From positions 124,001 to 188,000 of the forward strand of contig LSRY02000023.1 in the NCBI GenBank assembly GCA_001643675.2: a DNA stretch of 64,000 bases, given 5' to 3'. Below are positions 3,501 through 40,536 of the stretch, piece after piece (position 1 is the first letter of the stretch; the number at the start of each line of letters is the position of its first letter). Origin of the DNA: Monocercomonoides exilis PA203 (Eukaryota > Protista > Preaxostyla). The translations under genes and the position numbers were made by a program. The notes under the pieces are model-generated. The model ran no database searches and was not told the DNA's origin. It saw nothing but the letters and a program-made list of their open reading frames with translations.

Positions 3501-4138
3501 AAGAAGGAGAAGAAGACGAGTTCATTGCAAAGGCGCTGGCTGAGCAGAGCAATGCGAAGGAAGGAGAGAAGGAAGGAGAGAAAATTGGGGAGAGGAGAAG
3601 AGGAAGAGAACAAAATGAGAATAAAAGCAATGCAACAAGAAAGGGGGCAATAAGTGGAATGGACGAGAAAGAAAGGGAGGAAGGAGAAGAAGAAGGAGAG
3701 GAAGAAGGGGAGAAAGAAAAAGAGGAAGGAGAAGAAGGAGAAGGAGAAGGAGAAGAAGATGATCCGATGAAGAGGTTTGCGAAGATGCAGCAGGCGATGC
3801 TGGCGACGAAGCTGCAGATGCCACAGAACAAGATGAGGCTTTGGAAGGACACACGATATGCCCTGCTGAGGATGGGCGAGGTGAGTCTGAGGGGAGCAGA
3901 GCAGCAGACTGGAAGAGATTATGACTTTGCTGACTTGGTCATGCGGTGGAAGGGGAAGGGCTCTACAAATGACAGAATCCGCTCGGCTGTTAAGAGGATT
4001 ATGAGGAAAATGCCAGAACCTGAACAAGATTTAAATCAAATGCAAATTGAAGAAGAAAAACCTGAAATTCTATCTCCGGATTCAACCAACGATAAAACGC
4101 TGGTAAAAATGGATTCCGAAGATAACACTTCATCTTGA
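524..4138 (+). CDS. THOC1: THO complex subunit 1 (Hpr1/THOC1-like) with long low-complexity inserts; introns 821-923 and 2451-2686
   Basis: Motifs LLRTC..L..RL..GRLLTFLSFIFPMEERSGVNITGSF, Y.SFWKLQ...NP, PKFLTS..LFEQE|LKD..IR and RENLWFRWK..C parallel THOC1; two phase-0 GT-AG introns join ORFs 524, 924 and 2453. Confidence 0.8.
2500..2598. repeat. (TTTCTC)n hexanucleotide microsatellite in THOC1 intron 2
   Basis: Directly visible tandem TCTCTT units. Confidence 0.9.
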
Positions 4139-4186
4139 TGTTTTCAAAATTTTTGTTTTAATTTTTAAACCCATAACAATTTTATT

Positions 4187-5207
4187 ATGAGTAAATACGA
4201 TCGTGCTCTTACAGTTTTCTCTCCTGATGGACATTTATTCCAAGCGGAGTATGCAATGGAAGCTGTAAAAAAAGGTGCTGCATCTATTGGAGTTCGGGGT
4301 GCAAATTGTGTCATTCTCGCTTTGGAAAAGTTTGAAACAAAAAAACTACAAGATTCAAGAACCGTGAAGAAAGTTGGTGCGCTTGATAGCCACATTGCAC
4401 TTGCATACTCTGGATTGTCGGCAGATGCAAGAGTAATTTTAAACAAGGCATGAATTTGAATAGATGAAAAGTGTCAATTAAAACTGTTATTTGAAATGAG
4501 AAATGTAATTTGCGTAAATTGAGACTTTTATTTGTTACTAATTTTCAAACATTAAATATTTTTGTTTTTTGAAAATAATTGTTTGCTGATATTAGGCAAG
4601 AATTGAATGCCAAAATTTCCGTCTAAGAATGGATGCTCCATGTCCTGTTGATTATATTGCAAGATACATCGCTGGAATACAACAGGTTTTTCTTTTATTA
4701 TTAACAGCATGTATTTGTGTTCGTTATATTACATTCATATCTGTAGAAATATACTCAATCAGGAGGAGCAAGACCATTTGGAATATCAACTTTGATTGCT
4801 GGATTTGATCCAGACAAAACACCTCATTTGTTCGTAACAGATCCAACAGGAACATCTACAGAATGGCAAGTATGCTATTTTATTTTGTCAATGAAATTTT
4901 TATTTTTACAAATCAATAAACTTTTTTCAAGGCCACTGCAATTGGCAGAAGCGGTGATGTTGTAAGAGAGTATCTTGAAAACCACTTCCAACAGGATCTT
5001 TCCACAAATGATTCAATTGATTTGGCCATGAAAGCGCTGCTGGAGGTTGTCGATACAGGCTCAAAAAATTTAGAAATTTGCGTTATGGAATGCGGAAAGC
5101 CGATGAGAATCTTAGCTGATGCTGAAATCACTGCATGTATTGAAAGAGTAGAAGGAGAAAAGAAGAAGGAAGAAGAAGAAAAGAAAAAGAAGCTTATGAC
5201 TGCTTAA
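4187..5207 (+). CDS. PSMA7: 20S proteasome subunit alpha-4 (alpha type-7); introns 4448-4595 (GC-AG), 4686-4746, 4870-4931
   Basis: N-terminus [20 protein letters not shown]; spliced LNK|ARIECQ..QQ|[20 protein letters not shown].|ATAIGRS..VREYLE..KALLEVV..GSKNLEI. Confidence 0.95.
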
Positions 5208-5527
5208 AAGTTTAAAGATTTTTTTTTAAAAAAAAACAAATCACATTGCAACAATGCATTTTTCATATTTATCAATCATTTTTTTAAAACAACGCAATTC
5301 ATAAATACAAGAGAAAAAAAACCTCGAAAAGAAATGAATATATAAATTAGTAGAAAGTGAATTGAGACAATCCATTTATGGCTGTTTAAACCAATATTCT
5401 CTGAAGCAAAATAAGAATTTGCCAAGAAATGATCAATTTTTTCTTCAATAATTTCAACAAATAGCCTTTTCATTTGCCCCAAAGCTGCAAAAATTCTAAG
5501 TCTTTTTGAAAGATCAAAATGTTACAT

Positions 5528-6411
5528 TCAACCCATTCTTCTCCGCTTTTCACTTCCTGAATTGCCTTCTGTTCTGCCTCCATCGATACTATCTCCGCGA
5601 CGTTTAGTTGTAATAACTCCAATTAGTCCCATTGCCTCTGACATTTTCTTTTCAAATTCTGCATTCTCGTCATCTCCCCTGGGATTATCAAATCGAATAC
5701 TTTTAAGAATTAACATAAAAAAAAGAGCAGTATATTATGAAAAATGAAGCAAACTGCGAAAATGAGCAAGTTGGACCATCTGGGCAAAATCCAGCTAAAT
5801 ACAAAGGACACGCTTGCTTTCTTATATGCAAATTCTTGCACAATGGACCTGCGAATAGTTTGATAAATATTTGTTGAATACGCTTTTTTTTGGAAAAAAA
5901 TTCTTTAAATCATACCTCGTCGACAAAATCCACGCTTATACCAAGCACATTCTTTTTGCTTTTCTTCTGGTTTTATATGGCGGAATGGGCATCCCTCTTT
6001 TGTGCATTTTCCTAGAGGAACACAATTGTCATCAAAAAAAAAATATTGGAAAATAAAGCAAACCATCTCGAGCAAAAAACTTACATTCAGGCATAAGTGT
6101 TAAATCGTAAACATGAAGAAAATCGCATTGATTTCCCTTCATGCATAATCCTTTGAACCAGTGCTTGCAAACAACTTTTTTGCTTGAAGGAAGATGTTTA
6201 TATGGGCATTTATTTTCTCTAGGGCAATGACCCGCTAAATGCAAAGCGCAAACTTCCCCACGTCGAGATTTTCCATCTAAATAAGAAGAAAAAGAATAAT
6301 GAACTCGTTTGAAAAATTCTGAATAATTTGCGAACTATCGTCAAATAATGATCGCTTAATATCGTTTTCCACATCTGTTACTGGAAATAACGATTGCAAT
6401 GAAACTTCCAT
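5528..6411 (-). CDS. CPSF4: Cleavage and polyadenylation specificity factor 30 kDa (CPSF4/Yth1), five CCCH zinc fingers, multi-exon
   Basis: Exons encode VCALHLAGHC..CPYKH, VVCKHWFKGLCMKGNQCDFLHVYDLTLMPECKFF, CPFRHI..KECAWYKRGFC and CPLYLAGFCPDGPTCSFSH|IRF; ATG at 6411, TGA at 5528. Confidence 0.9.
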
Positions 6412-6633
6412 TTTACAGATTGAAACTTTAAACAGAAAAATATTTTAGCTTGATCGTTTTAACCATTTTTATAAAAACATCATTAACAGTTTTGTCGAAA
6501 GAAAACTAATTATTTTTCACAATGAAAACTTCTTATTGATTTTGCTTCTTCTTTGAAGTTGACAAATATAAAATGATGGTTCCTGATTTGATCTTATCCA
6601 TATTAAATTTAATCAAGCAGAAAGATTTTCTTT

Positions 6634-7996
6634 ATGTTACCTTCAGAAGTGTTAAACTTTGAAAAGCTCTGGGAGAAAATTGAAAATATTAAATTTAGTT
6701 CGTTGTGTGATATAGAATCCTTTGCACGAAAACTGAAAATATCTGTTCAAATTGCAGATAAAAATATTTTGCAAAGAGTATTTCAATATACTTCAATGGA
6801 CAATTTTTATAAACTGCTGATGGTTCATCAATTTGATGATTTGATTGCGCAACAGCTATTTTCTTCATTGAATGCACTTTTATTTGGTGCAAGATTTTGC
6901 GAAATGGAGATTTTTCAAATATTTCCAATGAATTTCGTTGGATTTTTATCAGATAAGTTCATGAAGGAAATTCAAAAGAAAGAAAGAAACTTTGGGCTTA
7001 TTCATCAAATTGCTTTGAGTATTTGTTTAATTCCCGAAGATTGGCAAGATAATTATCGAGCAATAACTTTTCAGATCTTTGAACAATTTCTCCAGGATTT
7101 ACAAAATGAAAATGCTTTAAAAGATGAGATGCGAATAGAAGAAATATTGTTTTCAATGCGTCATACTATTGGATGTTTGAATTTTTTAATTTTTGAAAGA
7201 TTATCTTTTTATGTTTTTCAAAATATATTGACATTTGTTACTGAAAGACTTTGGGTATACAAAATCGATGGATAAGCTTCGCAAGGTTTTATTGGGGCTT
7301 CTTCAAAGGCAATCTATCAATAAAATTTTGTCATATCCAAGTTTTATTTATCTTTTGCAAATTATGCTTACTGAAAAAATAGATTATATGTCGTTGAAAA
7401 AAATGAATTTGGTCAACATATTTATCCGAGATTACAGCAAATTTGAAGCAGAAGATGCTCCAGGGTTACTTAATTTACGCCGTGATTACGTAATAAACGA
7501 GACAAAAGAATTGATCTTTGAAATGAAGCATCTTCTCTTCAATCCAATAGATGTCGTGAAATCTCAAGAGCTTATAAAGATTTTAGCTGTTTTCACTAAA
7601 CGCCCAGCTTACTGTGCCTCTGTTTTGAGCCTTGTTTATGATGTTTTTGAGGAGATAATGAAGTTTTGCGAACCTTGTCATTTCGAGCTTTTGATAGAGA
7701 GCGGATTTCTTCGAATGCTGCTGAGTGGCTATTCTCAGTTTTGTGTACATTCAACTCAAAATGACCAAAATGCTGAGGAAATCGCAAGGGCATTGATTTT
7801 AAAGTTTGACCACCATTCATTGCTAAAATTGGGTGCGGGACGGTGCAGCAATATGAAAGAGGAAGTGGTCAGAATTATTGAAGAAGAGTGCTTTGAGGAA
7901 GCAATTGTCGCACTTAATGTTGATTCACCTACTTTGAAAGATGTAATTAATGTCAGAGATATTATAAATTCAAAGCATTTTGCGCAAATTGAATAA
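6634..7996 (+). CDS. Hypothetical helical protein; intron 7175-7247 joins the two ORFs
   Basis: A 73-bp GTTTG...AAG intron gives in-frame TIGY-FGYTKSMDK; no recognisable conserved domain. Confidence 0.65.
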
Positions 7997-23268: not shown

Positions 23269-26200
23269 TCATTTGCCACTCAAGCTCTCTGTTCCTGTGC
23301 TTTCAATCATGATGTTGCTTTCATCTATCGTGTCATTGTCTCTGTCACTTGTTTTGTTGTCTCCTTTCAGACCTTCAAAGCTTTCATATATTGCATCCGA
23401 TTGTGTTATCATCATCGCTGCTCCTGGCATCCGAACAAACATCTCCCTCCGAAAATCCACAACGCTCGGCCGATCCTCTCCTGCACTCAACAGACATCTC
23501 CGAGCCACTTCTTCAAACTTTCCACTTCTCATCCTCTGCACATCCGGCCTCTCCCCATTTGCAATCTTATCTCCAGCTGTCTCTGCATCATACTCCCCAA
23601 ACGGGATCTGCAGCGTCAGGCACTCCCACAGCATCATCCCAATCGAAAACACTACGGATTTTTGTGTCGCTTTCATCTTCTTGTTCATCAGAAGCTCAGG
23701 TGCTTTCCATCTTAAGCATTCATTTTTGTTGTCTTTATCATCCTCAAAGGCAGATGAGGGCAAATAGTCCTCCTTCTCCTCCTCATTACCATCACTTGCA
23801 GATGTCACAATCGTGGTTGACGAGATTGAGGATGAATCTGAATCATCAGATGAAAAATCTGAGTGGAGAGCAATGCAGATCACCATGTGTTCAGAGAGCA
23901 GAACAATATGAGGGCTCAAGTTTGATAAAGAGGGAAGTTCATCTTCCTCATCCTCAAATGAGTGGAGAGCTCCATTCGCCACCCAGAACATGATCTGAGA
24001 TGCTGTTTGCTCCCTTTCCTGCAAAGTGCCAATAGCCATTTCCTTCTTCTCGTTTCTTCCATGCAGCAACATGAACAGCGAGTCTCTCAGATCCACAATC
24101 AGCTTTTCATGTGGAGACGAGCAGGCCATTGCATCCACCAGATTTGACATCGATGAGGTGGTGGGGCACAGACTCTCCGATCGAACAAATGTTGTGTCTG
24201 TGTCTGAAGTGTCTGTCGTGGAAGTGGATGAAATGGATGGTGATGGTGATCTCTTTCTTGTCTCTTCTTCCTCAATTTCCTTTTCCTCAACCTTTTCCAG
24301 TGCCCATTCTGGGATCTTGTCTGAATCTTTTCCCAGAATGTATTCTGTTGATCCGCTCTCGCTCAGCAAATACTCTTCTGACTCCGAATGCGCCATCTTC
24401 TTTCCACACATCCTCCTCTTTGCATTCTCCTCGTTCTTCTTCTCTGCCTCTCTTTCTGCTCTTCGCCACTGCTCCTCAGGCGACATCTCCATCGTCACCA
24501 TCTCAATCAGCTTTGGATCCTTTTTCACTGTGTCTTCCACAATTATCTCCAATTCTTTTGTTCTTCTCTTTTGCTTTCTCCATCGAACAACAAATATTAT
24601 AAATCCAATCAAAGCAATAACAAACAGCACTGCAAATATCACAATCACAATCAATGCCCATGAAGACTTTCCTTCTTTTCCTCCTTCAACGAGATTTCCA
24701 TCATCTTTTGGCTCAGTTGCACTTTTGTTCTTCAGGACAAATGAATCAGTTGATGATGGTTTATCAGCGCTCCCAAACAGAATATGCACACTCACTTCTG
24801 CTTCACTTGCCACCCCTTCAACTGTCTTGACAGGAACAGACCCATGCACCTCTTCTTCGGATATGAAACCGCTTTCATCAAACGAATACTTCTCAACCAC
24901 CTCCTCATCCCCAATCGCTGCAACTGTCTTGAACGAGAGGTTGCACGGAAGGAGAACTGATCCTCTGAACACAACATCCACCACTTCCCCTGACTTTTCC
25001 GATGACACACTCTCCACCCTCGGGATGAAAAACGCAGATGCTCTTTCTCCTGCTATCCCTTCCAGTGTGCATCCTTCATTCAATATCCACAACGATGTAT
25101 TTGGCAACACTCCATCCCCTCCTTTCAAGCTCGTAACTTTCAATTTAGCGGAGCTTTCACACAAAACATTCCGCCTTGCCGATACATAATTCGCTATCGA
25201 CGGGTTGTTGTTCATGAATTCCCCTTTTTCAATCTCCACACTTCCACCTGACAACGAAAGCCCGCCTTTCTTCAAGTTGCTGATTGTTGTATCTTTCATC
25301 AGAGCATTGCTGGATTGAACATCCACAACTGACCCATTCCATTTGCAGATCTCTTCCATTCTGCCATTTCCCCCCCATTCTTCTCTTGTCTCATCTTCAA
25401 AACCTCCAAGGAAGCTGCAGGAATCAAAACCCACATCAACACAATTATCCACGGACACAATCGATCCTTTCTCCTTTGGGCTCAAACACTTTCCAAATGA
25501 ACAGTTCAACAGAATAACATTTTTCACCACATTCTGCATTTTCACCACACTTCCACTTCTTGAGAGGGCGATATTCTGAATATCCAACATTTTCATCTCC
25601 ACTCTTGCTCTGTTTCCAACTTCAATCACATTTCCCTCTGATTCCAAATTATCTATTCTTGTTTCTGAAATGGTTGCTTCAGATCCCCCAACAAATTCTA
25701 TCAAAGGCACACACAATTTCATTCTCGTGAATGCACACTTGTCCATCTCCAGTTCTCCCCCTTCAACTGCCATTATCGTGCTGGAAATGATCAATTCAGT
25801 TGTGGATGACAAACATTCGCATTCTCTCATCATTGTTGTTCCGTTCTTCACTTTCATTATGTACCTGTGATTTGCTTCGTGCAACTCCCCAAACTCAAAC
25901 ACACACCGCTCCACAACACACTCATTCACAAACACAATCACACTCCCTTCATTTCCCATCTCTTGAATTGTTGCATTGAAATGGACTGTCGCCTTCATCT
26001 TCTTAATTGACTTCACATTCAAATCTCCAATCACACATTCTCCTCCAATATCTCCTTCTTCATCAATAAAAATCACATTCATTATCGCCTTTTGAATGTG
26101 ATCCACGCTGCAGCTGATGCTTTTGCAAGGATTCATCTGCTCTCCACACTGTCGCATATCCCTCCCGTTCGCATTCACAAACACCTGCTGCCCATAATAG

Positions 26201-29200
26201 AATGTGATCAGCGGGATCAGATCAATATCTGTTTTCTCTTCATCGCTTCCACAAATCGAGTTGTTCGACTTCAATGACTCCTGGCTGAAGTCCAATGAAA
26301 ACAATTTTTCATTGATCTGCTTTTCAATCCGGTTGCATCGGATGAACACGTCCTTCCCCACATACGCATCATTCATTGTGAATCTTGTTCTTTCAATCAT
26401 TATTCCTAAAGGTGGTGCATCTTCTGTTTCTGTCTGTGCTCCATCCAAACCAGATGCATCTATCATCAGCCCTCCTCCTCTCCCCTTCACCACTGAGCAC
26501 GAGCACATCCCAAACATGCAACCACTCACTCTCAACTCACTCTCTCTGCTCTTCAAACTCACTTTCATCCCTCCTCCCTCTTCGCTCCACTCACTCAGAC
26601 ACTTCGTCATCACACACCCTTCCATCAAACATCTCATTCCACATTCAAATGAACCAGCACTCACAATTGTGGCTCTGTTTTCACTGCATGTGATGTTTGT
26701 GAATGTTGAGCTGTTGATGCTCAACAACATCACTCCATCTTCATCCACATTCTCTTTATTTCTCAACAACGTTGCTTCTTTCAATGATCTTTCTGATAAG
26801 AGAGCAGATTCACTGATTGATATCAGACTTCTTCCAGAAACACTCGTGTCACTGATCGACAGATTCATCACATCTGCCACTTTCACATCTGAGGACAATT
26901 CCATAAATCCTTGTAACAAATGGAATTCTTTCATAGCACAGTCTTCGATCGCCACTCTCCCTCCATCCACCATCACCAAACAGAAATTCGTTTCTTTTGA
27001 AGCATCCTCACTCACAAATGAGCAGCTTCTCACAAAAAGTGCCCCACCCCCTGATGATGATTTGATGAATGCCAGATGATGAACAAGCACATTTAGTAGA
27101 ACAAATGAAACATTCATAAACGAGAGAATCACTTCTGAGGCAACCATTGCTTCTTCCATCTCTTCTTCATTCTCTTCTTCAACCCTCAGCACTGTTCCAT
27201 TTTCTTCTCCTTCTATTGATATTTTTGGTGTGTCTGAATCTGTCTGAATCAAATGCAATGAATTCTGAAGAATCACAAATTCAACAATTATCACATGTGA
27301 TTCACTTCTTCCAAGTGTTCCATATCTCAGCGATATCAAGTGATTGATTGATGAGCATGGTGCTTCTGAATACCCACACCCACTGAAGTCTCCTCCTTTC
27401 TCTTTCGAAACATAACCTTTCTCGCTCCAATTTGACCACAAATACACAACCAGTGGAATCACATATCCCTCTCCTGTTGCCTTCCTCTCCCATCCACACA
27501 ACTCATCCAATGATCCCAGCTCCTGTGGACTCATCTCCCATTTGAAATGATCATCGTTCACAATTACATTCAGATCCCATCCCGAAATAAACACATTCTT
27601 CCCTTTCCAGGCATTGCACCCCTCAAATTCCATTCCTTCCAAAACAAATAATCCCATTTGATTGGGAAGTTCAACAAACATCCCTCCTCCCAATCCTTGC
27701 GCCCCACTCTCACCTTCACCAGATGACACTTCACATCCTTCAAACTTCACCTCCTTCATCTTCAAGCTCCCTCCATTTCCAACTGCTATCATTATCCCAC
27801 CTCCTCTTCCATTTGAGTCTGCTTCGTTCTCTGCCTTGCAACTATCAAATGTGGTTGACCCATTGATCACAACCTCTTCATCTTTGCCGATCGAAATTTT
27901 CATTCCTCCACCGCAACCGTCTTTCTCCTCAACACCACATTCACTGAATGTGCAACCAGAAACAACGATAATAACAACAACAGAAACATCTCCATCCTCA
28001 CTTTCACTTTCACTTTCCTCACGTATTCTTTCCAAACAGCTTCCCCCTCCAGTTCTCCTCGTTATTCCAGTGAGAACACAATTCGATAGTTCAGCAATAC
28101 CATCTCCAGTGCATTTTATAATTGAATTTGACAAGGTGTTTATTGGACCTTTGTTCGAAAAGCCTGTCATGTGCAGCTCTCCTCCATCGATATGAAAAAC
28201 ACAGTATTCAATTTCATTTGGAAAGTTTCCAGCGAAAGGCTCAACTGAACAATCACAGACACTCAAAACATTTGAAGAGGAAAGGACGAATGATGAGGCA
28301 AGAGAAAGAGTTGATGGAAGAGAAAAGCACATATCTTTCAGCAATGCTCCTGATGAAATACAAATCAAACAATCTGAGTCAAACAGAGGAGAAGGCACAA
28401 CAACATTAACGGCAGTGTCTCCAATTGATCCTGTCACATTCCAAAAATGTCTTTCCATCACAATCTCTTCACGGAGCACAAATCCATTTTTGATTCTGAT
28501 TGTTCTTGTTTCATCCCCATACCACACCCCAACCACTTTTTTGATCGATGAGCACGGATACCGCTCCATTCCACATCTGCTGAAGTCCAAGCTTTTCTCT
28601 CCTCCCACAAATCCAACATCCCCTGCTTCCATCAAAAATGGAAGAAGTGGTGCACACTCCTCCCGGCACCCATCCTCATATCCCAATAAGTCACTGTCTA
28701 TCATCCCCTCACACTCAAAGCCAAATGTGGCCTTGTTCACAACATCTCTCAAGCACTGTGCATTAACAAATATATTGTTCCCTTTTTCTGCTTGGCAACT
28801 CTCAAAAGAAGCACAATAGATACAAAAAGAACAACCCTCATCAACAACATCCAAATAAACAGCTCCACCGTATCCTCCAACTCCATTTCCCTTCCCCACA
28901 CAGCTGCAATTGCTGAATGTCACATTATCAACATTCTCATCACCACTTTCACTTGAGATATTCCCAATCTCCATCTGTGAGCCTTCATTGAGCTGAATCC
29001 ACATCCCTCCTCCACACCCATCCTCACATTCACAATTCCTCATCATTCCTCCTGAGATATTCATCTTCATCCCATACACCAGACTCCCACAAATCACACT
29101 TCCATCTCCACTCATCCGAGAAATCCCATTAACCTCGACTCCCTTCATCTGGAAAGATAATGAGTGCTCTCCCCTGATCTCGAATGCAGAAACTGATGAA

Positions 29201-31440
29201 AATGATATTCCACTAATCTCAACAGAGTCAAAAATGATAGATCCCATCTGGATGATCATAAGTGATGCTGATAATACACGTTTTTCATCGTTTGTCAATG
29301 AAGTGATTACACACTCACACATATTCAGAACTCCTTCTTCTGCCAGCACTTCCATCAGATGAGACGATGGATTCTCTCCACAAACAAATGTCATGTTTCT
29401 GAAACTTCCCATTCCTGTTCCAATGGCCACCAACGATTCTCCATTTGGTGATCTGTTGTGAACAATCACTTGTGTTTTATCTTTTCCATCAAACGATATC
29501 TTCATTTTTCCAACTTCAACTTTGTTTTCTTCATAATCCCCAACTTCAATGATCACTTCATTGCTGCTTCCATCAGTATCCAGCACACTCATTCCATATT
29601 CAATTGTTTTGCATCTCCTTCCATATTCATCTCCTGCCCTCACAAACCCACAGGCCATGTGATCCAGTCCTTCCATTGAGTTCACAAACACTGGGTTGAA
29701 GTGGATCTTTGGAATCCAATTGTTGTATTCTGTTGATCCTTTGACCACTCGATTGCTGTTTGCACTTGTGCTTGAACGACAATGCACAAACGAATTTTCA
29801 TTGATGTTTGTCCATCCCTCAACAACATAAACATCATGTCCCGGATTCACAGCTGTGTTATTCGAAAAAAAGCAGAACAATGTTGGTGAATCATTGATTC
29901 CTGTAGCATGATTCCAGCATACACCTGCTCCATTATTTTCGCTGAACCCACCACAAAACGAACAATCAGAAATCACAGCAGTTCCATTGTCAAATAACCC
30001 AACACTTCCACCTCCACTGAATTCCGTTGTGTTCTTTCTACAACAATAAAAGTGACAATTTTCAATAATCCCTTGATATTCATTGTGCTCAATCAATATC
30101 CCACCTCCAATATGTTTTGTTGAACTGTTCGAACAATTTGTGTTCTTCATCGAAAATGTTGAAACAAAAAAGAAATCAATGCAGCCCGATGATGCTTCTG
30201 CAGCGCCTGAATCAAATTTGGATGAAGTAATTTCAAAATTTTTACCACCCGTTCGAGAAGAAATTGCTCCACCACACCAAGTGCAATAGCATGAATAAAA
30301 TTTGCACAGTGTCACATTTATCAGTCCAGAAGATGTGAAAAGTATTGCACCACCATTAACTCTCGATGAATTTTCAGTTGAAAGGTTATTGAAATCACAA
30401 TCCACAAATGTTGCATCACCTGAGTCAACAACTTGACTTTTCATTGTCTTGTTTCCTATCACTGGATCTGCATTATCTCTCCGAATGCATTGAAAATAAC
30501 TCGAATTCCAGGCGAAGAAATGATGATATCCTGAACGCATCCCTTCGACCAATCCTCCACCAAGTGGAGAATCCACTTTCTCGACAACGCATCCAGTGAA
30601 AGAATAATCATTTTTCGAGTTGCCCATCGAATGGTAATTGTTTTGGATTCTTGCGCTTTGTGAGATATTCGAAAAATGGCAGTTGAAAACTGATATTTTC
30701 CAAATGTTTGCGCTTGCCAAAAGAGAAGTTGATCTTCCAAGAAAAAATGAAGAAAAATCTGAATCAATGATTTTCAAGTCTTTTTTCATTTTCTCTGAAC
30801 TCGTTTTTTCACAACCAACAAATGGTTCAATAATTTCTCCAATTTCAGCACTCAAATAAGAAGTGTTGCTCAGAATCAAATGACCTTCATTCAGTGTGAA
30901 TAAATAATCACTTGATGCTCCATATTGATGGATTGAACAACAATGAACAAGAACTGTGGACAAGTTGTTGATGAACATGAGAGATATGCTCTCTTCTTTG
31001 AAAAAGGACAAATATTTCATTTCACAACTCGAATTTCCAAAATTGATCATCGCCATCACAGTGGATCTTTGGTTGCGAAAAACTCTTTTTGAATCACCAA
31101 TTGTCTTTAACTGCCAACTCTCATTTAATTCATGATTGTTCAAATCCTTTAATTCTCCTCTTTTTTCTTTTGAAAAATATCCTCTCTGTTTTTGCATCAA
31201 CCTGGGTGTTTCAGCATCTTTATCAGTAATTTTGTCTTTATTCACATTATCATTTGCATTGAAGCTATGAATATTTAATCCATCAAGAATTTCGCCTGAG
31301 CGGTCGTAGAATAATTGTCGATTCAAAATATGTTCATTTGGAGAACAGACATCAAATTTCAAACCATTGGCCTCATGCTTGCCAACAATCTCAAAGCTGA
31401 TTAACAAGGCTATCCAGACAAACAAATGCAGCAAACTCAT
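23269..31440 (-). CDS. 2723-aa intronless receptor-like protein: signal peptide, pectin-lyase-like beta-helix ectodomain, one TM helix, degenerate (pseudo)kinase C-terminus
   Basis: N-terminal hydrophobic leader; repeated GGAI/GGGM..F..C motifs; TM WALIVIVIFAVLFVIALIGFIIFVV-RWRK; kinase C-lobe RWKAPELL..VFSIGMMLWECLTLQIPF..GERP..RP. Confidence 0.88.
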   Translation of the reverse strand: MSLLHLFVWIALLISFEIVGKHEANGLKFDVCSPNEHILNRQLFYDRSGEILDGLNIHSFNANDNVNKDKITDKDAETPRLMQKQRGYFSKEKRGELKDLNNHELNESWQLKTIGDSKRVFRNQRSTVMAMINFGNSSCEMKYLSFFKEESISLMFINNLSTVLVHCCSIHQYGASSDYLFTLNEGHLILSNTSYLSAEIGEIIEPFVGCEKTSSEKMKKDLKIIDSDFSSFFLGRSTSLLASANIWKISVFNCHFSNISQSARIQNNYHSMGNSKNDYSFTGCVVEKVDSPLGGGLVEGMRSGYHHFFAWNSSYFQCIRRDNADPVIGNKTMKSQVVDSGDATFVDCDFNNLSTENSSRVNGGAILFTSSGLINVTLCKFYSCYCTWCGGAISSRTGGKNFEITSSKFDSGAAEASSGCIDFFFVSTFSMKNTNCSNSSTKHIGGGILIEHNEYQGIIENCHFYCCRKNTTEFSGGGSVGLFDNGTAVISDCSFCGGFSENNGAGVCWNHATGINDSPTLFCFFSNNTAVNPGHDVYVVEGWTNINENSFVHCRSSTSANSNRVVKGSTEYNNWIPKIHFNPVFVNSMEGLDHMACGFVRAGDEYGRRCKTIEYGMSVLDTDGSSNEVIIEVGDYEENKVEVGKMKISFDGKDKTQVIVHNRSPNGESLVAIGTGMGSFRNMTFVCGENPSSHLMEVLAEEGVLNMCECVITSLTNDEKRVLSASLMIIQMGSIIFDSVEISGISFSSVSAFEIRGEHSLSFQMKGVEVNGISRMSGDGSVICGSLVYGMKMNISGGMMRNCECEDGCGGGMWIQLNEGSQMEIGNISSESGDENVDNVTFSNCSCVGKGNGVGGYGGAVYLDVVDEGCSFCIYCASFESCQAEKGNNIFVNAQCLRDVVNKATFGFECEGMIDSDLLGYEDGCREECAPLLPFLMEAGDVGFVGGEKSLDFSRCGMERYPCSSIKKVVGVWYGDETRTIRIKNGFVLREEIVMERHFWNVTGSIGDTAVNVVVPSPLFDSDCLICISSGALLKDMCFSLPSTLSLASSFVLSSSNVLSVCDCSVEPFAGNFPNEIEYCVFHIDGGELHMTGFSNKGPINTLSNSIIKCTGDGIAELSNCVLTGITRRTGGGSCLERIREESESESEDGDVSVVVIIVVSGCTFSECGVEEKDGCGGGMKISIGKDEEVVINGSTTFDSCKAENEADSNGRGGGIMIAVGNGGSLKMKEVKFEGCEVSSGEGESGAQGLGGGMFVELPNQMGLFVLEGMEFEGCNAWKGKNVFISGWDLNVIVNDDHFKWEMSPQELGSLDELCGWERKATGEGYVIPLVVYLWSNWSEKGYVSKEKGGDFSGCGYSEAPCSSINHLISLRYGTLGRSESHVIIVEFVILQNSLHLIQTDSDTPKISIEGEENGTVLRVEEENEEEMEEAMVASEVILSFMNVSFVLLNVLVHHLAFIKSSSGGGALFVRSCSFVSEDASKETNFCLVMVDGGRVAIEDCAMKEFHLLQGFMELSSDVKVADVMNLSISDTSVSGRSLISISESALLSERSLKEATLLRNKENVDEDGVMLLSINSSTFTNITCSENRATIVSAGSFECGMRCLMEGCVMTKCLSEWSEEGGGMKVSLKSRESELRVSGCMFGMCSCSVVKGRGGGLMIDASGLDGAQTETEDAPPLGIMIERTRFTMNDAYVGKDVFIRCNRIEKQINEKLFSLDFSQESLKSNNSICGSDEEKTDIDLIPLITFYYGQQVFVNANGRDMRQCGEQMNPCKSISCSVDHIQKAIMNVIFIDEEGDIGGECVIGDLNVKSIKKMKATVHFNATIQEMGNEGSVIVFVNECVVERCVFEFGELHEANHRYIMKVKNGTTMMRECECLSSTTELIISSTIMAVEGGELEMDKCAFTRMKLCVPLIEFVGGSEATISETRIDNLESEGNVIEVGNRARVEMKMLDIQNIALSRSGSVVKMQNVVKNVILLNCSFGKCLSPKEKGSIVSVDNCVDVGFDSCSFLGGFEDETREEWGGNGRMEEICKWNGSVVDVQSSNALMKDTTISNLKKGGLSLSGGSVEIEKGEFMNNNPSIANYVSARRNVLCESSAKLKVTSLKGGDGVLPNTSLWILNEGCTLEGIAGERASAFFIPRVESVSSEKSGEVVDVVFRGSVLLPCNLSFKTVAAIGDEEVVEKYSFDESGFISEEEVHGSVPVKTVEGVASEAEVSVHILFGSADKPSSTDSFVLKNKSATEPKDDGNLVEGGKEGKSSWALIVIVIFAVLFVIALIGFIIFVVRWRKQKRRTKELEIIVEDTVKKDPKLIEMVTMEMSPEEQWRRAEREAEKKNEENAKRRMCGKKMAHSESEEYLLSESGSTEYILGKDSDKIPEWALEKVEEKEIEEEETRKRSPSPSISSTSTTDTSDTDTTFVRSESLCPTTSSMSNLVDAMACSSPHEKLIVDLRDSLFMLLHGRNEKKEMAIGTLQEREQTASQIMFWVANGALHSFEDEEDELPSLSNLSPHIVLLSEHMVICIALHSDFSSDDSDSSSISSTTIVTSASDGNEEEKEDYLPSSAFEDDKDNKNECLRWKAPELLMNKKMKATQKSVVFSIGMMLWECLTLQIPFGEYDAETAGDKIANGERPDVQRMRSGKFEEVARRCLLSAGEDRPSVVDFRREMFVRMPGAAMMITQSDAIYESFEGLKGDNKTSDRDNDTIDESNIMIESTGTESLSGK

Positions 31441-32332: not shown

Positions 32333-32642
32333 GAAAAACAAATCATATCCTTTTAAAAAATAATGTATAGACAAATGAGTTTAACTAATTAACACTTTTA
32401 CACATTAATGAATGCAAAAACTAAAAGCAATCAAAATAAAGAAGAGATATTGGCCTTATGAAATGTCTTTCATTGGGTAATCAATATGAAATGAGTGGAA
32501 CGACGTTTTAATATGAAATGCTGCAAAAAAAAAATGTTTAATTTGCAATGAAATGAAACAAGTGAAAAGCAAAATCAAATGAAAAAGCCAAAATACAAAA
32601 GGAAAATTTGGGTAAATAAATGTTTTCTTTTAAATAAAAAAC

Positions 32643-35600
32643 TTAGAAAGTGATATTTTGCTGAAGTTGTATATGTGAGTTAGGCTCCATCTTTTTGAAA
32701 AGCAACTTCAAATGCGAATTGTTAAAGGAAGATTGCATCGAATTCATGTCTGTCATTTCAGGCAGTGTAGCCATTGAGCAAAAATACGATGTTGCTGCAT
32801 TCTCAATGGAATGCTCCTCATTCTGAAGCAAAGAAAGTACAGAATCCTAATAAAACATAGCAAGTGTGAACAAAATAAAAGAAAAAGAAAAGAAAGAAAG
32901 AATGAACGAATGATAGAAAAAGACTAATATAGAAACATTCGAATGATTTGTCCAAACCTCCAAGTTCCTCTTTGATTTCCTTTCGACTGCCATCACCACA
33001 ACCTGGTTGTTCTCCGTGCTGATGCGTATGTCTGACTCAACCACGCCATCAAGCTCAACCACCACAACAACCTCCTCTTCCTTCTCACTCACCTTCGGCT
33101 CCACCTCCAAAATCTCAACAAAGCGCCCTGGATTCACAAGCACAGCATCTGCATCAGAGACACATGTTTGACTATCAGCTGAGGAATTAGAAGCAGAAGC
33201 AGAAGCAGTCGAAGAAGAAGAAAATGATGATGATCTTCTTGCCAGATACTGTTCAGCTATGTGCTGAGCTGTCTGAGCTGCTCTCTTCCTCGTCAGCGCC
33301 TGCAGCATATCTCTTCTCAGAACAAACATCTTCTTCACGATGGCATCTCTTGACTCACGCGCCTGCTCCCCAGCTTCATCACTCCGTTCTCTCTCATCGT
33401 GCCCGAATTGCACAAACGGTACTGTTTCCTTTGCCAATTGCATCAGACTTCTTTCACTCGACGCGTATTGCTGCTGCAGCAACGCCAGTTCAGCAGACGC
33501 TTCTTCTGCCTCTCTCGCAGCCTCGTCTGCCAGCTCCATGTTCTCCACTGCCCTCAGCTCTTCTTCTGTTGCATACTCAATCTCATCTGGAGCGCGTGAT
33601 GATGTTTGTGATGCAGTCTCACCTGCACCACGACTCACTCCACTCTGTGAGTGCTGTGCTGATTGACGTGATTGAGAATGAGATTGTGTCTGTGTCTGTG
33701 TCTGTGTCTGTGATTGCTCCTCTTCTGCCTCTGAATGCTCACTCACCAACTTCTGCAGCATCCTCAAATCTGGCTCCTCTGGCGATCCAACCGCCCTCCT
33801 CACTGAAAGATCGCCTTTTGACCGTCTTGCTGAGAAAGACGGGAAATGCGACTGGACTTCGCCCCACGAGTCGTGCATTCCAATCAGATCGTCCACAAAC
33901 GGCTGCTCTTTGTCTGCATATGAGACAGCCCCCACTGCTTTTCTGCTCTCTTCACTCATCTGCTCAATCTCGTCTGGATCTGCACACTCAAAACGGCGGG
34001 TGATCTGCCCTGGCTGAAGGGCTGGCCTTTTCTGTGTAAATATCTTTCGCCGCTGGGCTGTTGAGAGTGGCTGTGCTTCTGCTGAAGAGGATGTTTGCTT
34101 GGCTGTCTTTTGAGGAGGCGAGGGAGGACGAGGCGGAGTCAGCAGATTGCCATTTTGTGCTTCAGATGAGGCAGCAGATGCCTCAGGAGCCGTTTGGCTT
34201 GGTTGTGGAGCTGTTGGTGGATGAGATGATGTTGGCGATGAGGAAGCTGTTGAAGTGGAAGAAGAACCAGAACCAGAAGCAGAAGCAGAAGCTGGCTGTT
34301 GAGTTTCTGCTTTCTTCTTCTCTTCTTCCTGCAGTTGTGATTGCGATTGCTGTGATTGCTGTTGAGGCTGCGATTGCTGCTGAGTGCGGAAGATGGAGCG
34401 GTATCTGTTCCTCTCCATCACCAGCTTGTTCATATTTTCTGTTGTCAGACGGAGCGAATCGCAGGCTGCTTTGACGTCTTCCACAGAAGGAACAGAATGC
34501 ATATCGATACAGTCATCTTGGGAGACGGTGGGTGGAGTGCTGGGCTCGGAAGAAGGAGGAGGAGGAGAGGAAGGAGAAAGAGAAGTAGGAGAAGATAAGG
34601 AATCTGGGGAAGAAGAGGAGGAGGAAGAGGAAGAAGATGATGATGATGGCTCTGTAGATGATGATGATAAAGAAAAGATTGAAGAAGAAGAAGAAGAAGA
34701 AGAAGATGCTGAAGATGATTCATCAGCAGGTTGATGATCATCTACTTCATGCACAGCATCTTTTGTGTCTGTTTTATTGCTCTCTTCTGAAGACGATGCA
34801 TTTGAGCTGTCTGTTGTCTGCTCAGATGAAGGAGAAGATGAAGAAGCAGAAGAAGAAGAAGAAGAAAAAGAAGATTCTGATGAAGTTGAAGAGGAAGAAG
34901 GTGAAGAAGGTGAAGAGGGAGATGAAGAAGTCGAAGAAGAAGACGAAGAAGAAGTTGAAGCAAACAGTGTTGGATTCGTCCTCCTCAGCCTCGCAATCAG
35001 CTCCTGAATCGTCTTGTCCATCTCTATTGCCCTCGCCCTCGCAGCCTCAAACACACTCACCTCTGCCGGAAACATCGCTCTTAATGCTCCTATTCTTGCC
35101 TCCACACTCTGCGACCTCCGAATCACCCCCTCCAGATTGTTCTTCTGCTCCAGCAGCTTCCTCAGCTCCGTCCGTCTCTCCACCACAGGCGCTGTCCAGT
35201 CTCTTAAACTGTCCATTCTGAGGGCATATTCACTCGCCGGCAGCAGCGGCGCATCTGCCAGCCACGCCAGCGTCGCATCCAGCTTCGCTCGCAGCGCCTC
35301 TGCCTCCAAATGGCCCATGCAGCCGTCCATCCGTGTGCTGCATTCAGACAGCAGCTCGTAGCACAGCTGCTCCAGCGCATTGCGCGCGTTCTCGCTCTCC
35401 TTCGTCATCAAGTCCTGTCTCACCATCCGCACTTCCTCGTCTGCCCACAGCTGCACAAACTGGTGGGGCGTGCGGGCAGAGAACACGATGTGCTCCTTCG
35501 GCTTCACCCGCATGGCAGGGCGGGTGCTGTCGGTGCAGACGAAGGAGGCGAAGGAGGCGGTGGAGAGAGAAGGAGAGGGAGATGGAGACATCACAGGAGA

Positions 35601-38600
35601 GACGATTTGGCGCTGGTGGTAGTCAGATGTGGCAGCACTGGATGAAGGAGGAGGGTTGGATGAGAGGGAGGAGAGGGATGATAAGGAGGAGAGCATTGCA
35701 GAGGGATAGGAAATTGGGTTGGATCCAGAAGAAGAGGAGGAGGATGATGATGATGAGGCAGAGGAAGAAGGAGAAGGTTGAAGAGCAACCGAAGAAGTAG
35801 AAGGAGTGAGGCAGCTGAAAGAAGAAGAAGCAGAAGCAGAAGCAGCAGAAGCAGCATTGTCAGTGTCAGTGGTGCCGATTGATTCGAGGACGAAAGGCGA
35901 AGCGAAGGAGAAGATGCCATTGCTGTCAACATCAACAACAATGCCAGCCATATCAGCAGTGGCATTGCATTCGATGGAGATGACACTCAAACTGTGTGGA
36001 TGGGCAAAGGAGTCATCCAACAAGCACATGCTGTGGTGGTGGCAGTGTGTGCTGCTCCCAACAAGAGAGGAGAGAGGGAGGTGGGTTGAAGAAGAAGAGG
36101 AAGAAGAGGAAGTAGAAGAAGATGTTGGGATGTGATCTTTGATTTCTGAATCTTCTTCAATCTTCTTTTCTTTGCCTTCGTCATTATCTTCTTTCACCTC
36201 TTTTTCTTCTTCTTCCATTTCTATTTTTCCTTCTTCTTTGTCTTCTTTTTCTTTTTCTTTTTCTTTCTCCTCGTTTTCTTTGTCTTCACTTGTTTCGATT
36301 TCCATTTCCTTTTTATTTGTTTCGTCTTCAATCTCTTCTTTTTTGGCTTCTCCTTTTTCTTCTTCTCCTTCTTCTCCTTTTTCTTCTTCTTCTGTTTCCT
36401 TCAACTCTGCCGAATTCTCTTCTTTCTCTTTCTCTTCAACATCCATCTTTCCTTCACTTTCTTCGCTCTTTTCTTCTTTTCCTTCCTTTTCTTCTTTTTC
36501 ACCGTCTTCTTCTTTTTCTTCTTCCTTTTCATTTTCATCTTCTCCCTTTTCTTTCTCTTTTTGCCCTTCCTCTTCTTGTTCCTCGTTTCTGTTGTGTGAC
36601 AATAAATCTTCCATCTCCATGTCTTTCTCTTCTTCTTCTTCTTCTTTCTCTTCTTTCTCTTCCTCACTCGCATTCAGTTTGTCTTTCTCTTCTTTTTCCT
36701 CTTTTTCCTCTTTCTTTTCCTCTTTCTCTTTCTCTTCGCTTGTTGTTCCTGCTTCTGCTTCCTCTGCCATCATTTCCCCCTGCTTTTTCTCACATCCATC
36801 ACACAAGTTGTCTTCTTTCTCTTTCTCCCTCTCTTTCTCTTTCTCTCTTTCTCTCTCTTCTCCATCGCATCTCCCTCCTCCACACACCGCGCACGGATAT
36901 CTTGCATCAAAGAACACTTGAATGAGTCTATTTCGATTGAGTCGTGGAGGATGAAGAAGATTGTGGCTGGACAGAGAAAGAGGAGGAGGAAGAGAAGAAT
37001 CTGTGTGAAGAGCAAGCTTTGAAATTGGATAAGAAGAGGAAGAAGAGGAAGAGGTGGAGGAGGAGAAAGGCATTTGATTCAATGAAGAATCAGAAATATC
37101 CTCCCCTTTATCTTTCTCCTCTTTCTCTTTCTCTTTCTCTTTCTCTTTCTCTTTCTCTTTCTCTTCTTTCTCTTCTTTCTCCTTCTCCATTTCACTTTCA
37201 TTTTCATTCATATTTTCGTTCTCTTTTTCCATCCTCTTCTCTTTTTGTTGTGTCTCTCTCATCTGCTGCTCATATTCTTCTTGTGCTCTGTCTCTCATGT
37301 CAAATCTGATTGTGTGGTGCGAAGGGAAGGGTGTGAAACGGGGGAAGGCTACAACGCATCTGCGCACTGGAAAAGAAGAAGAGGAAGAAGAAGAGGAGGA
37401 GGAGGAAGAGGAGGAAGAAGAAGGAGAAAGAGAGAGGGAAGAAAAGGAAGAAGACAAACTGGTTGTTGGGCAGGTGCATATGTGAGGATAAGAGACACGA
37501 GGACAAGAATGAAGAAGATGATGATTATGATGATGTTGATATGTGCTATGTTGGATGGAAGATAAAGAAGAAGATGAGGAAGAAGAGGAAGAAGAAGCAG
37601 ATGAAGAGGAAGAGGAAGAGGAGGAAGAAGAAGAACATAATGAAGGTGATGTTATTTCGAGAGTGTCAGAAGAAGGAGATGAGGCGGATGTTAATGGTGA
37701 AATGGCTGTGAGCGAAGGAGATTCAGAAAGAGGAAGAGGAGAAGAAGAAGCAAATGGCATATCATTTTCATTGGAAGCGCAGTGAAAACAGAGAGACTCG
37801 AATGGATTGATCACAATTGATGAAGGAGGAGAAGAAGAGGAAGAAGAGGAAGAAGAGGAAGAATTAAGAGACAAAGGAAGAGAAGTTGGCTGATGGCGTT
37901 CTTCGTGTTCAGACTCGAAGACGTAAATGCTGTGTGGAAGAATATCATGAAGCTCAATCTGAATGAATTGAATGAAGTGAATAAAGTGAATAAAATCGAA
38001 AATGATTGGAAAAAATTATTAATCATCAAACACAAAACATTCGAATATCAAATAAAAGATGGCAAGAAACAAAGAAAAAGCAAAGAATAAACAGAACATC
38101 ATCTTCATTCAAAAACAAAAGAAAGAAAATGACTTTATCTCACTCAACAAACAGTAGTTCTCTTCGGAATCTCCTCGTTGAGTGCTCTGTTAGCAGCAGC
38201 GATGGCCGAAGGCAGAGGAAGATGGCTGTTTGCTTCCTTTGCCTTCTGAATGGCCCTGTCCATTTCTAATTGGGCAGCATATCTTGCACAGCCCCAGGCA
38301 ACAGACTCGGCGGCATTCAGTTTGTGTGAGAGAGGAGGCGACGAGGCAGAGAAAACTGATAAGGAAAAGAAGAAGAGGAAGAGAGAAGAAAGGAAGAGAG
38401 AAAGGAGATAAGGAATAAATAAGTGACGAATCGATTGTTAAAAAAAAAAAATAAAGAAGGAATTGAATAAATATGATGCCAACAGTTGGAAATAAAAATA
38501 AAAATAAAAGTTGAATGTGGTATGCAAAATCCAATGAACTTCAACAAAACCTTCTTTCAAGGCAGACTCCAACACATTCTGAAGGAAAGTTATTCGACTT

Positions 38601-40536
38601 GACGCTCCGACAACTTCAATCACATCCAAATTGATTGGAGAATTTGAAGAAGAAGAAGCAGAAGCAGATGATGATGATGAAGATGAAGTTGTTGTTGCTG
38701 TTGTTGAAGGTGATACAGCTGTTGCAGTTGCTCCTGGTTTTGCTTCTGAAAGGTGAGCAAATATTGAAAGGACGAACAAATAAATAACAATAAGTTCAAA
38801 TTTCAAAAATCAATAGGAAAAAAAAATATCAAATTAAATTCACAATAAATTTTCTATTTCCTTTCAAACACTCTCAAAATACAATGAACTCCTCTAATCA
38901 ACCCATCCTCTCCCATCCTCTCCCATCCTCTCCCATCCAATCAAACCTTCTCTGTGTCTCGCCAGATCCTCCCTAGTTCTCTGCACCACGCTCCTCACCT
39001 CCCTCTCCACTTCCTCTGTGATCAGCGCAACCATCTCCTCCCTCCGCATCGAGAACGACACATCCACCTCTCCCCCAAACTCCACCGTCTCGTTCGCCAT
39101 CGGCGTCGTCGACAGCATCCGCTTCATCGCCTCTGCTGCCCTCTCCACTTTCATCGCCATCCGCCCGTCGCTCTCACTCAGCGCGGCCTGCTCTGGATGC
39201 TCCTTTCTCAGTGTCTCCATCAGCCGCTCCCGCACTTTCTCGGTTATCCGGTTCCCGCTCACCAGCTGGCTCCACTCGTGGCTCAGCGTCTGGATCTTCA
39301 ATGTCTTCTTCTCTTTGCTGCTGCCGTTATTCTCCTTCTCTCTATCTCTGTCTCTTTCTCTTTCTCTATCTCTATCTCTTTCTCCATTTCCGCCTTCTGC
39401 CTCGTCTGTCTTGCACGACAGCTCAAACACAGAAAATTGGAAGCCGCTTGAGCCAAAGTCAGCAATTGCCAACGTGACACTCTTTTTTTGGTTGAAAAGG
39501 CTGGTCATCTGACTGAATCCATACGATATTGCACCTGGTTATTAATTCAATATCAAGCATTCGACAAATTTTCACAAAATGAACAAGAAGAAAAAACAAG
39601 ATATTTGGCAAATGCTTATTCTAAAAAAAGATGAAATCATGTTAAAAGTGTATACTTGCAGTTGTGTCATGCAGAATGGCAAGCAAATCCACAGCTGCAA
39701 TGGAACAAGCAGTAGCGAGCGATTGCTTTTGTGATTGAACCCAAAAAATGGGAGCGTTGAGCACAACTGCAACTCGTTGCATTTGCGTTAGCGACTCAGC
39801 CTCACTTCACAGAATCATTTTTTAAAATATTATTCATTAACATTTTCAAAAAAAGGTTAATCATTTGAGGAGAATGGAACATTAAAAAGGATCGGGAAAA
39901 TTGACAAAAAATGTACTAAAACAATAAAGCAAACGGTGGTATTTGTGTAAATTCTGGTGGAATATCTCCTGGATAATTTGAACTCTGAATCAATTTCCTC
40001 AAAAAAGATGCTAAAATAATATCAGGGGAAAAAAGTAACATTCATCTTCAACTGATAAAGATTAACCTGTTAATTGCTCAACGGAGAATGTTGTCATTTC
40101 TCCTGTTTTTCCATATTGAACTTTAAAAGTGGGTTGCTCCAATCTATATCGATCGTGAAACAATTCCAATCGTTTTGTTGCAGAATTTTTGTATTTTCCT
40201 ATTTTCTGTTTCAAGGATGAGACGGCTGATTGACGTTCCGATTGCGAGCCAATTATTCTATCTCTTCCAGAGAAAAATATGCTTGTAGGAGTTGATCTTT
40301 TTCTTTCTTCATTCAAGGCACAAGAGACAAAATCACGTACATCAACTGGAACTTGGTCCGCATCGAAGAATGTTCTCATTGGAGCAAATACAATGCTATT
40401 ATGCGTTCCGAAATCAATTCCATATGCTGAACAATTTTTAATTCAATTAAATTTTATACAGATAGCAACAAATTTAATATTTCAATTCATGAAAAATTAA
40501 GAAAATAATAATCATACTTTTCCTGGGTTGAAGCAT
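32643..40536 (-). CDS. Hsp110/Sse-type Hsp70-superfamily chaperone with huge low-complexity inserts and a C-terminal alpha-crystallin (Hsp20) domain; 9 exons, roughly 2,250 aa
   Basis: Spliced NBD motifs MLQPRK|TYGIDFGTHNS, NEERKRSTPT, FSVEQL, VLNAPIFW..AILHDTTA|SAISYG, IADFGSSGFQ, AEAMKRMLST, IEVVGASSRI, LSHKLNAAESVAWGCA; SBD IELHDILPHSI, AFPRFTPFP, VDVDSNGIF; lid EVRMVRQD...NARNALEQLCYE..KLDATLAWL..Y..RMDSL...PVVER; terminal ACD split by intron 32847-32957. Confidence 0.87.

Follow-up and report, generated by a model that had tools for sequence, protein, structure and literature searches.

A gene on the minus strand of the window (40536-32643; the window is the whole 64,000-nucleotide stretch of the Monocercomonoides exilis PA203 genome that was analysed) encodes an Hsp110-type chaperone body, a long linker and a C-terminal alpha-crystallin domain (ACD) with an IxI-like tail. 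These are two well-known chaperone modules in an undescribed combination that is conserved within the lineage. With a probability of about 0.6, we interpret the locus as one expressed gene whose cytosolic product would tether Hsp70 nucleotide exchange to assemblies of small heat-shock proteins (sHSPs). That Hsp110 and alpha-crystallin share one gene had been proposed in a first-pass annotation of this DNA, and the proposal is borne out by an orthologue from the oxymonad Blattamonas nauphoetae in which both Pfam domains score above their cut-offs, by a second M. exilis gene of the same design, and by an intron within the ACD that these genes have in common.

Gene structure and the Blattamonas orthologue

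An exhaustive HMMER search with the piece spanning the helical lid of the Hsp110 part, the linker and the first half of the ACD returned one protein, KAK2962467.1 of B. nauphoetae (1137 aa, 'putative Heat shock 70 kDa protein 15'), which is the orthologue that had been sought among other oxymonads. It scores 97.8 bits on Pfam HSP70 (E 6.4e-28) and 44.1 bits on full-length HSP20 (E 2.4e-11; residues 1031-1136, profile 3-101), and its ACD also scores 26.2 bits on PF17886. The public gene model unites both domains, and the precomputed Pfam matches list HSP70 as well as HSP20. Among solved structures, the N-terminal part is closest to Sse1 (E 6.7e-18), and the C-terminal 128 residues are closest to Hsp16 of S. 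pombe (3e-9) and to wheat Hsp16.9. In the AlphaFold model, the ACD has a mean predicted local distance difference test score (pLDDT) of 83.9, and its best 50 Foldseek matches in the PDB are all sHSPs. Therefore, the C-terminal domain is an ACD; a p23/CS domain or an unrelated fold, the alternative named at the outset, was checked, and p23/CS identity was rejected, because Pfam, PDB sequence matches and the fold matches of the Blattamonas ACD all lead to sHSP ACDs. The model of residues 850-1137 contains two long helices (54 and 82 residues, pLDDT ~90) that lead into the ACD. Modelling the Blattamonas ACD as a homodimer led to no verdict and counts neither way. KAK2962467.1 is colinear with the window gene across the nucleotide-binding domain (NBD), the segment that follows it, the end of the beta part of the substrate-binding domain (SBD-beta) and the lid.

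By phase arithmetic, the nine GT-AG exons of the window gene add up to 6675 nt, that is, 2224 codons and a stop; the nine-exon, single-frame structure of the first-pass annotation thus proved phase-consistent as well as colinear with KAK2962467.1. HDTTA, DFGSSGFQ, LSHKLNAAESVAWGCA, the lid motif ..SENARNALEQLCYE and both ACD halves were all found in minus-strand translations of the window. The exons and their main parts are as follows.

Exon 1: 40518..40536, minus strand; start codon and first 19 nt, MLQPRK..; the spliced N-terminus fits the start of KAK2962467.1
Exon 2: 40067..40426, minus strand; NBD lobe I, GIDFGTHNS..; 40% identity to KAK2962467.1 8-127
Exon 3: 39935..40010, minus strand; ..FLRKLIQSSNYPGDIP..; tblastn match to KAK2962467.1 120-147; donor approximate
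Exon 4: 39656..39804, minus strand; NBD segment ending ..HDTTA
Exon 5: 38947..39534, minus strand; NBD lobe II with the second phosphate loop DFGSSGFQ (Hsp110-type) and an E/R-rich insert; tblastn match to KAK2962467.1 202-341
Exon 6: 38551..38718, minus strand; adenosine-binding segment ..VGASSRI..; acceptor at 38719 or 38698
Exon 7: 38153..38355, minus strand; NBD end ..ESVAWGCA.. and a conserved lineage-specific segment; 61-65% identity to KAK2962467.1 416-476
Exon 8: 32958..37889, minus strand; one open frame for the SBD-beta blocks, which large Ser-rich and Glu/Lys-rich inserts interrupt, and for the lid, the linker and the first half of the ACD
Conserved SBD-beta end (in exon 8): 35871..36008, minus strand; ..DMAGIVVDVDSNGIFSF..; 50% identity to KAK2962467.1 597-642
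Hsp110-type helical lid (in exon 8): 34680..35516, minus strand; 37.7% identity to KAK2962467.1 646-820, E 9e-34
Linker (in exon 8): 33101..34679, minus strand; 526 codons, 1579 nt, S/A/Q/E/P-rich, partly helical-looking
ACD first half, beta2-beta5 (in exon 8): 32958..33095, minus strand; matched by Pfam HSP20, hhalign, BLASTP and PDB searches
Intron 8, inside the ACD: 32823..32957, minus strand; 135 nt, GT..AG, phase 0, AT-rich
Exon 9: 32643..32822, minus strand; ACD second half, beta7-beta9, I-Q-L tail motif and stop

The NBD pieces (GIDFGTHNS, ..HDTTA, DFGSSGFQ, ..VGASSRI.. and ..ESVAWGCA..) lie in upstream minus-strand frames. They are followed by a single open frame of 1675 codons (minus strand, 32847-37874), in which the SBD-beta blocks, the lid with ..SENARNALEQLCYE.., a long stretch rich in Ser, Ala, Gln, Glu and Pro and the first half of the ACD (..VVVVVELDGVVESDIRIS..AVERK) succeed one another, so the lid and the first ACD half do share an exon, as had been claimed. 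This frame runs free of stops for 1644 codons. The 526-codon linker has no in-frame stop, compared with 6-33 in the other five frames and with a mean of 24 and a minimum of 10 in 1000 shuffles; depending on the lid end chosen, its length is nearer 530-580 aa than the ~650 aa first estimated. At the 3' side, removal of intron 8 places NEEHS.. directly after ..KRNLE, in the reading frame of exon 9. At the other end of the gene, the N-terminus after splicing, MLQPRKTYGIDFG, agrees with the start of KAK2962467.1 and begins directly with the NBD, and thus there is no room for a leader peptide.

Domains of the protein and a second gene copy

All sequence searches with the window protein were made exon by exon. 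Two NBD pieces match the Pfam HSP70 profile (PF00012), namely 40065-40379 at profile positions 25-95 (16.1 bits, E 0.0035) and 38897-39508 at positions 228-314 (20.5 bits, E 0.00016), both of them, taken singly, just below the cut-off of 20.6 bits. Together with the 97.8 bits of the colinear orthologue, they identify an actin-like NBD of the Hsp70 superfamily; in our reading of the alignments, both phosphate loops (first and second) are retained, as is the adenosine-binding segment. The substrate-binding part is of Hsp110 type, with an insert in SBD-beta and an extended lid, unlike the Hsp70 layout. A large acidic insert separates the SBD-beta blocks, and the lid aligns to residues 598-699 of an 841-aa fish Hsp110-like protein, to which residues 666-765 of KAK2962467.1 align at 599-698 (E 4e-5). 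When KAK2962467.1 is compared with PDB sequences, Sse1 is the best match at 67 bits, the best Hsp70 reaches 57 bits and the NBD of human Hsp105 37 bits.

A segment following the NBD (window 38150-38350, minus strand; KAK2962467.1 430-476; ..QLEMDR..ANSHLPLPSA..) shows 61-65% identity between the window gene and Blattamonas. It is conserved far beyond the rest of the protein, and no alignable counterpart was found in ordinary Hsp110s.

HSP20 (PF00011) is the best or only relevant match for each of the two independent ACD pieces of the window gene, and the profile positions are consecutive: 3-40 for the first half (16.4 bits, E 0.01) and 44-93 for the second (14.6 bits, E 0.037), with a cut-off of 20.8 bits. 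Against a small ACD profile built without window rows, hhalign placed the first half with E 6.2e-5. The PDB sequence search had sHSPs as the best matches of the first half and gave no match for the second. In BLASTP, the two halves match those of the second M. exilis copy with E 9e-7 (38% identity) and E 5e-5, respectively, and the second half matches KAK2962467.1 with E 2e-4. The tail motif, I-Q-L, corresponds to I-N-I in KAK2962467.1 and to I-S-I in the second copy, at an equal distance from a conserved Pro.

The second copy was revealed by a search of the genome (82,301,135 bases, 101 contigs) with KAK2962467.1, which yielded two colinear exon sets, the window gene (C18) and a gene on C91 (C91:343500-351500, plus strand, about 789-6664 of that stretch). 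The C91 gene tracks KAK2962467.1 from the first exon of the NBD to the lid and on through an E/R-rich linker, and ends in an ACD, ..RRISIW; the two ACD halves show 47% and 52% identity to their KAK2962467.1 counterparts and keep the canonical motifs. All three genes have the ACD intron in phase 0. Its position is six residues past a conserved [EP]-R-K in both Blattamonas and the window gene, and C91 has it in the same loop; it measures 31 nt in Blattamonas versus 135 nt in the window gene. Because the place and phase of the intron are shared and the ACD halves are similar, the ACD module has a single origin and the fusion is older than the split of the two genera. For Monocercomonoides and Blattamonas, at the least, the Hsp110-ACD architecture is ancestral.

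In the linker and ACD, C91 is nearer to Blattamonas than the window copy is (47-52% identity), whereas at the NBD end the window copy is the closer one (61% versus 45% for C91), as it is in the lid (129 versus 92 bits). The pairwise identities of the NBD exons are similar (40-45%) and do not single out either copy as the strict orthologue of KAK2962467.1. Judged by its huge low-complexity inserts and degenerate ACD, the window copy is the more divergent of the two M. exilis paralogues; it carries several hundred residues of Ser-rich and Glu/Lys-rich insert, unlike C91 and Blattamonas. A short linker motif, N-P-F and then aromatic and Gly residues, is common to Blattamonas (~905-925) and C91 (~5800-5860 of C91:343500-351500). 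It sits in a disordered gap between two long helices and is not obvious in the window copy.

Expression, points of doubt and flanking genes

Four RNA runs from one study contain 84-87% of the 31-mers sampled from 32500-35300. This share is roughly the value expected for a spliced transcript reaching from the lid to the 3' end, and is too high for the 1579-nt linker to be missing from the RNA.

Several observations nevertheless weigh against one expressed gene for a working Hsp110-ACD chaperone. To begin with, the RNA evidence for the window gene is thin, consisting of 31-mer shares, and a transcript may stop before the ACD or be spliced within the linker. Evidence of this kind would also accommodate a gene-model artefact, i.e. 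two adjacent genes or a misassembly, with a small ACD gene lying downstream of an Hsp110 gene, for which there is a precedent in that some earlier M. exilis gene models had been wrongly fused (PMC8767320). We consider such an artefact highly improbable, since one frame, free of stops for 1644 codons, contains both the lid and the first ACD half, the order of parts is identical in two further genes (KAK2962467.1 and C91), and the public Blattamonas gene model also unites both domains.

In the Hsp110 part, the NBD of human Hsp105 scores below several Hsp70s against KAK2962467.1, and hence membership of the Hsp110 family rests mainly on architecture and lid. Furthermore, the catalytic Lys of Hsp70 is substituted in all three genes according to our alignment (E in the window, Q in C91 and Blattamonas), which makes ATPase activity doubtful. 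With the nucleotide-binding loops kept, this substitution fits a nucleotide-binding exchange factor better than an ATPase.

In the ACD, each half of the window copy falls under the HSP20 cut-off alone, the second half is weak in hhalign (E 0.1, in correct register), and the hallmark residues (beta7 Arg, A-x-x-x-N-G-[VIL]-L and P-[KR]) are lost in our alignment, where the window reads ..SYFCSMATLP.. and ..FNNSHLKLLFKK.. at these sites. In the same alignment, the Arg, N-G-x-L and I-P-R are retained in the ACDs of C91 and KAK2962467.1. Nor was the window ACD detected in a genome-wide HSP20 search. The match to the alpha-crystallin consensus reported in the first-pass annotation therefore stands as far as the consecutive HSP20 profile hits (3-40 and 44-93) are concerned, but both hits are below the cut-off and neither the beta7 Arg nor N-G-[VIL]-L is there. 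We regard the domain, as aligned, as ACD-derived but atypical, and its function in the window copy may have changed or weakened.

Finally, the genome retains a full-length ClpB/Hsp104 homologue (C69:379598-382195, minus strand, one 972-codon frame, 1135.6 bits on TIGR03346, profile 1-843), and a special disaggregase is thus not obviously needed. For the same reason, we rejected the notion that the fusion makes up for an absent Hsp104.

The divergence of the window copy could also mean that it is decaying or neofunctionalised, its chaperone domains no longer working, and that the ancestral function resides on the C91 copy. Its Ser-rich and Glu/Lys-rich inserts break the SBD and lengthen the linker, its ACD has lost the hallmark residues and escaped the genome-wide HSP20 search, and C91 is much nearer to Blattamonas in linker and ACD. 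By contrast, the frame of ~2224 codons is unbroken over nine exons, the RNA runs contain the stretch, and at the NBD end and in the lid it is the window copy, not C91, that is closer to Blattamonas. On balance, decay or neofunctionalisation seems to us rather improbable.

As to the surroundings of the gene, its start codon at 40536 (minus strand) is ~44 base pairs from the likely start, at ~40580 (plus strand), of a head-to-head gene with an eIF3b/eIF2A propeller; this would imply that the two genes share a very short promoter region or that their 5' ends overlap. The neighbour on the other side (minus strand, 23269-31440, start at 31440) is an intronless open reading frame of 2723 codons for a membrane protein that has an extracellular-looking region rich in Cys and Gly, a single hydrophobic span and, at its C-terminus, a partial protein-kinase domain (PF07714, E 3.8e-9).

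Proposed function and comparison with known systems

The same fish Hsp110-like protein, used as a probe on the genome, found about eight ordinary Hsp70 genes and one Grp170-like gene, and no stand-alone cytosolic Hsp110 among the best-scored candidates; the two ACD-bearing genes thus seem to be the sole cytosolic Hsp110s. The Grp170-like gene (C15:504500-512500, minus strand, 833-4570 of that stretch, 1245 codons) has K/E-rich inserts and ends in EQEL, and it probably encodes a relative of Grp170/HYOU1 in the lumen of the endoplasmic reticulum. Two canonical free sHSP genes, on C14 and C40, have tails I-T-I and I-S-I, and their products are possible partners of the ACD-bearing Hsp110.

Among the cytosolic nucleotide-exchange factors of Hsp70, Hsp110 is the main one. 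ACDs form dimers, and I-x-I motifs, including the tails of neighbours, bind in their grooves. It is from this background that we infer every activity and binding partner of the fusion protein. The Hsp110 part would serve Hsp70 both as holdase and as nucleotide-exchange factor. Through the ACD and its tail, the protein would dock on the ACD grooves or dimer interfaces of free sHSPs, or on further copies of itself, and an exchange factor docked in this way would concentrate Hsp70 cycling at assemblies of sHSPs and substrate. Alternatively, the fusion may be real and the ACD may do no more than oligomerise or regulate Hsp110, by mediating dimerisation or by latching the molecule internally through the IxI-like tail, with no bridge to free sHSPs or to aggregates. 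The general dimerisation of ACDs and the occupation of neighbouring grooves by IxI tails would suit this role, as would the absence of an sHSP N-terminal region, which is replaced by two long helices in the Blattamonas model; nothing direct speaks against it. We hold it to be unlikely all the same, and retain tethering to sHSP assemblies as the preferred function.

Full-text literature searches found no paper on Hsp110 or Hsp70 fused to an ACD, and the Preaxostyla genome paper makes no mention of an Hsp110-ACD fusion. The earlier statement that no example had been described is thus upheld for the literature, with the qualification that the Blattamonas protein could already be found in public databases, labelled generically as an Hsp70. 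Metagenome scans, one queried with the NBD exon and one with the conserved segment that follows the NBD, gave no relative, and look-ups in the ESM Atlas gave ordinary Hsp70/HYOU1-type clusters or nothing. Searches for homologous proteins found only KAK2962467.1 and one fish protein, in candidate lists that were swamped by low-complexity words and are uninformative on distribution.

The mechanism by which sHSPs hand substrates to the Hsp70 machinery is still debated as an open question. An Hsp110-ACD that occurs naturally as one chain, is conserved in its lineage and is apparently the only cytosolic Hsp110 there would offer a ready test of this transfer: with the ACD removed or swapped, one could ask whether release is faster when the exchange factor is tethered to sHSP assemblies. 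At 1137 aa, the Blattamonas protein is compact and a practical object for such work. Its public annotation as 'Heat shock 70 kDa protein 15' conceals the architecture.

Among known systems, the Hsp110/Sse1 family (yeast Sse1, human HSPH1/HSPA4 and Arabidopsis HSP70-15, the last being the source of the NCBI name of the Blattamonas orthologue) shares with the oxymonad proteins an Hsp70-like NBD with a second phosphate loop of the D-x-G-[HS]-S type, the SBD-beta insert and a long helical lid aligned at Hsp110 positions, and of the solved structures, Sse1 matches the orthologue best. Unlike this family, the oxymonad proteins add a C-terminal linker and an ACD with an IxI-like tail, as well as the conserved segment after the NBD, and the window copy has hundreds of low-complexity insert residues. 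The canonical sHSPs (S. pombe Hsp16, wheat Hsp16.9 and the C14 and C40 proteins) resemble them in the ACD beta-sandwich, as modelled for the Blattamonas orthologue, and in the C-terminal I-x-I-type motif, which reads I-Q-L in the window copy. The oxymonad proteins differ in having, where sHSPs have their N-terminal region, an Hsp110 followed by a linker that is helical or disordered; the window copy also lacks the beta7 Arg and N-G-[VIL]-L. The ArsA/GET3-type ATPases with an HSP20-like domain (PF17886) set a precedent, since in them an ACD-like domain is joined to an ATPase; these differ in ATPase fold and pathway, and the PF17886 match of the orthologue reflects ACD similarity only.

The closest working analogue is the BAG3-HSPB8-Hsp70 system of animals, which is alike in principle, since an Hsp70 nucleotide-exchange factor is physically linked to sHSPs: BAG3 binds sHSPs via IPV motifs and Hsp70 via its BAG domain (PMC6297355). 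BAG3 is unrelated in sequence and binds sHSPs non-covalently by short motifs, whereas the oxymonad factor is of Hsp110 type and has the ACD in its own chain. We tentatively suggest, as a possibility short of an even chance, that oxymonads exchanged a stand-alone cytosolic Hsp110 for ACD-bearing forms, which would make the Hsp70 exchange factor an integral part of sHSP assemblies, and that these forms would constitute a covalent, independently evolved counterpart of the link that animal BAG3-HSPB8 makes between sequestration and Hsp70-driven release.

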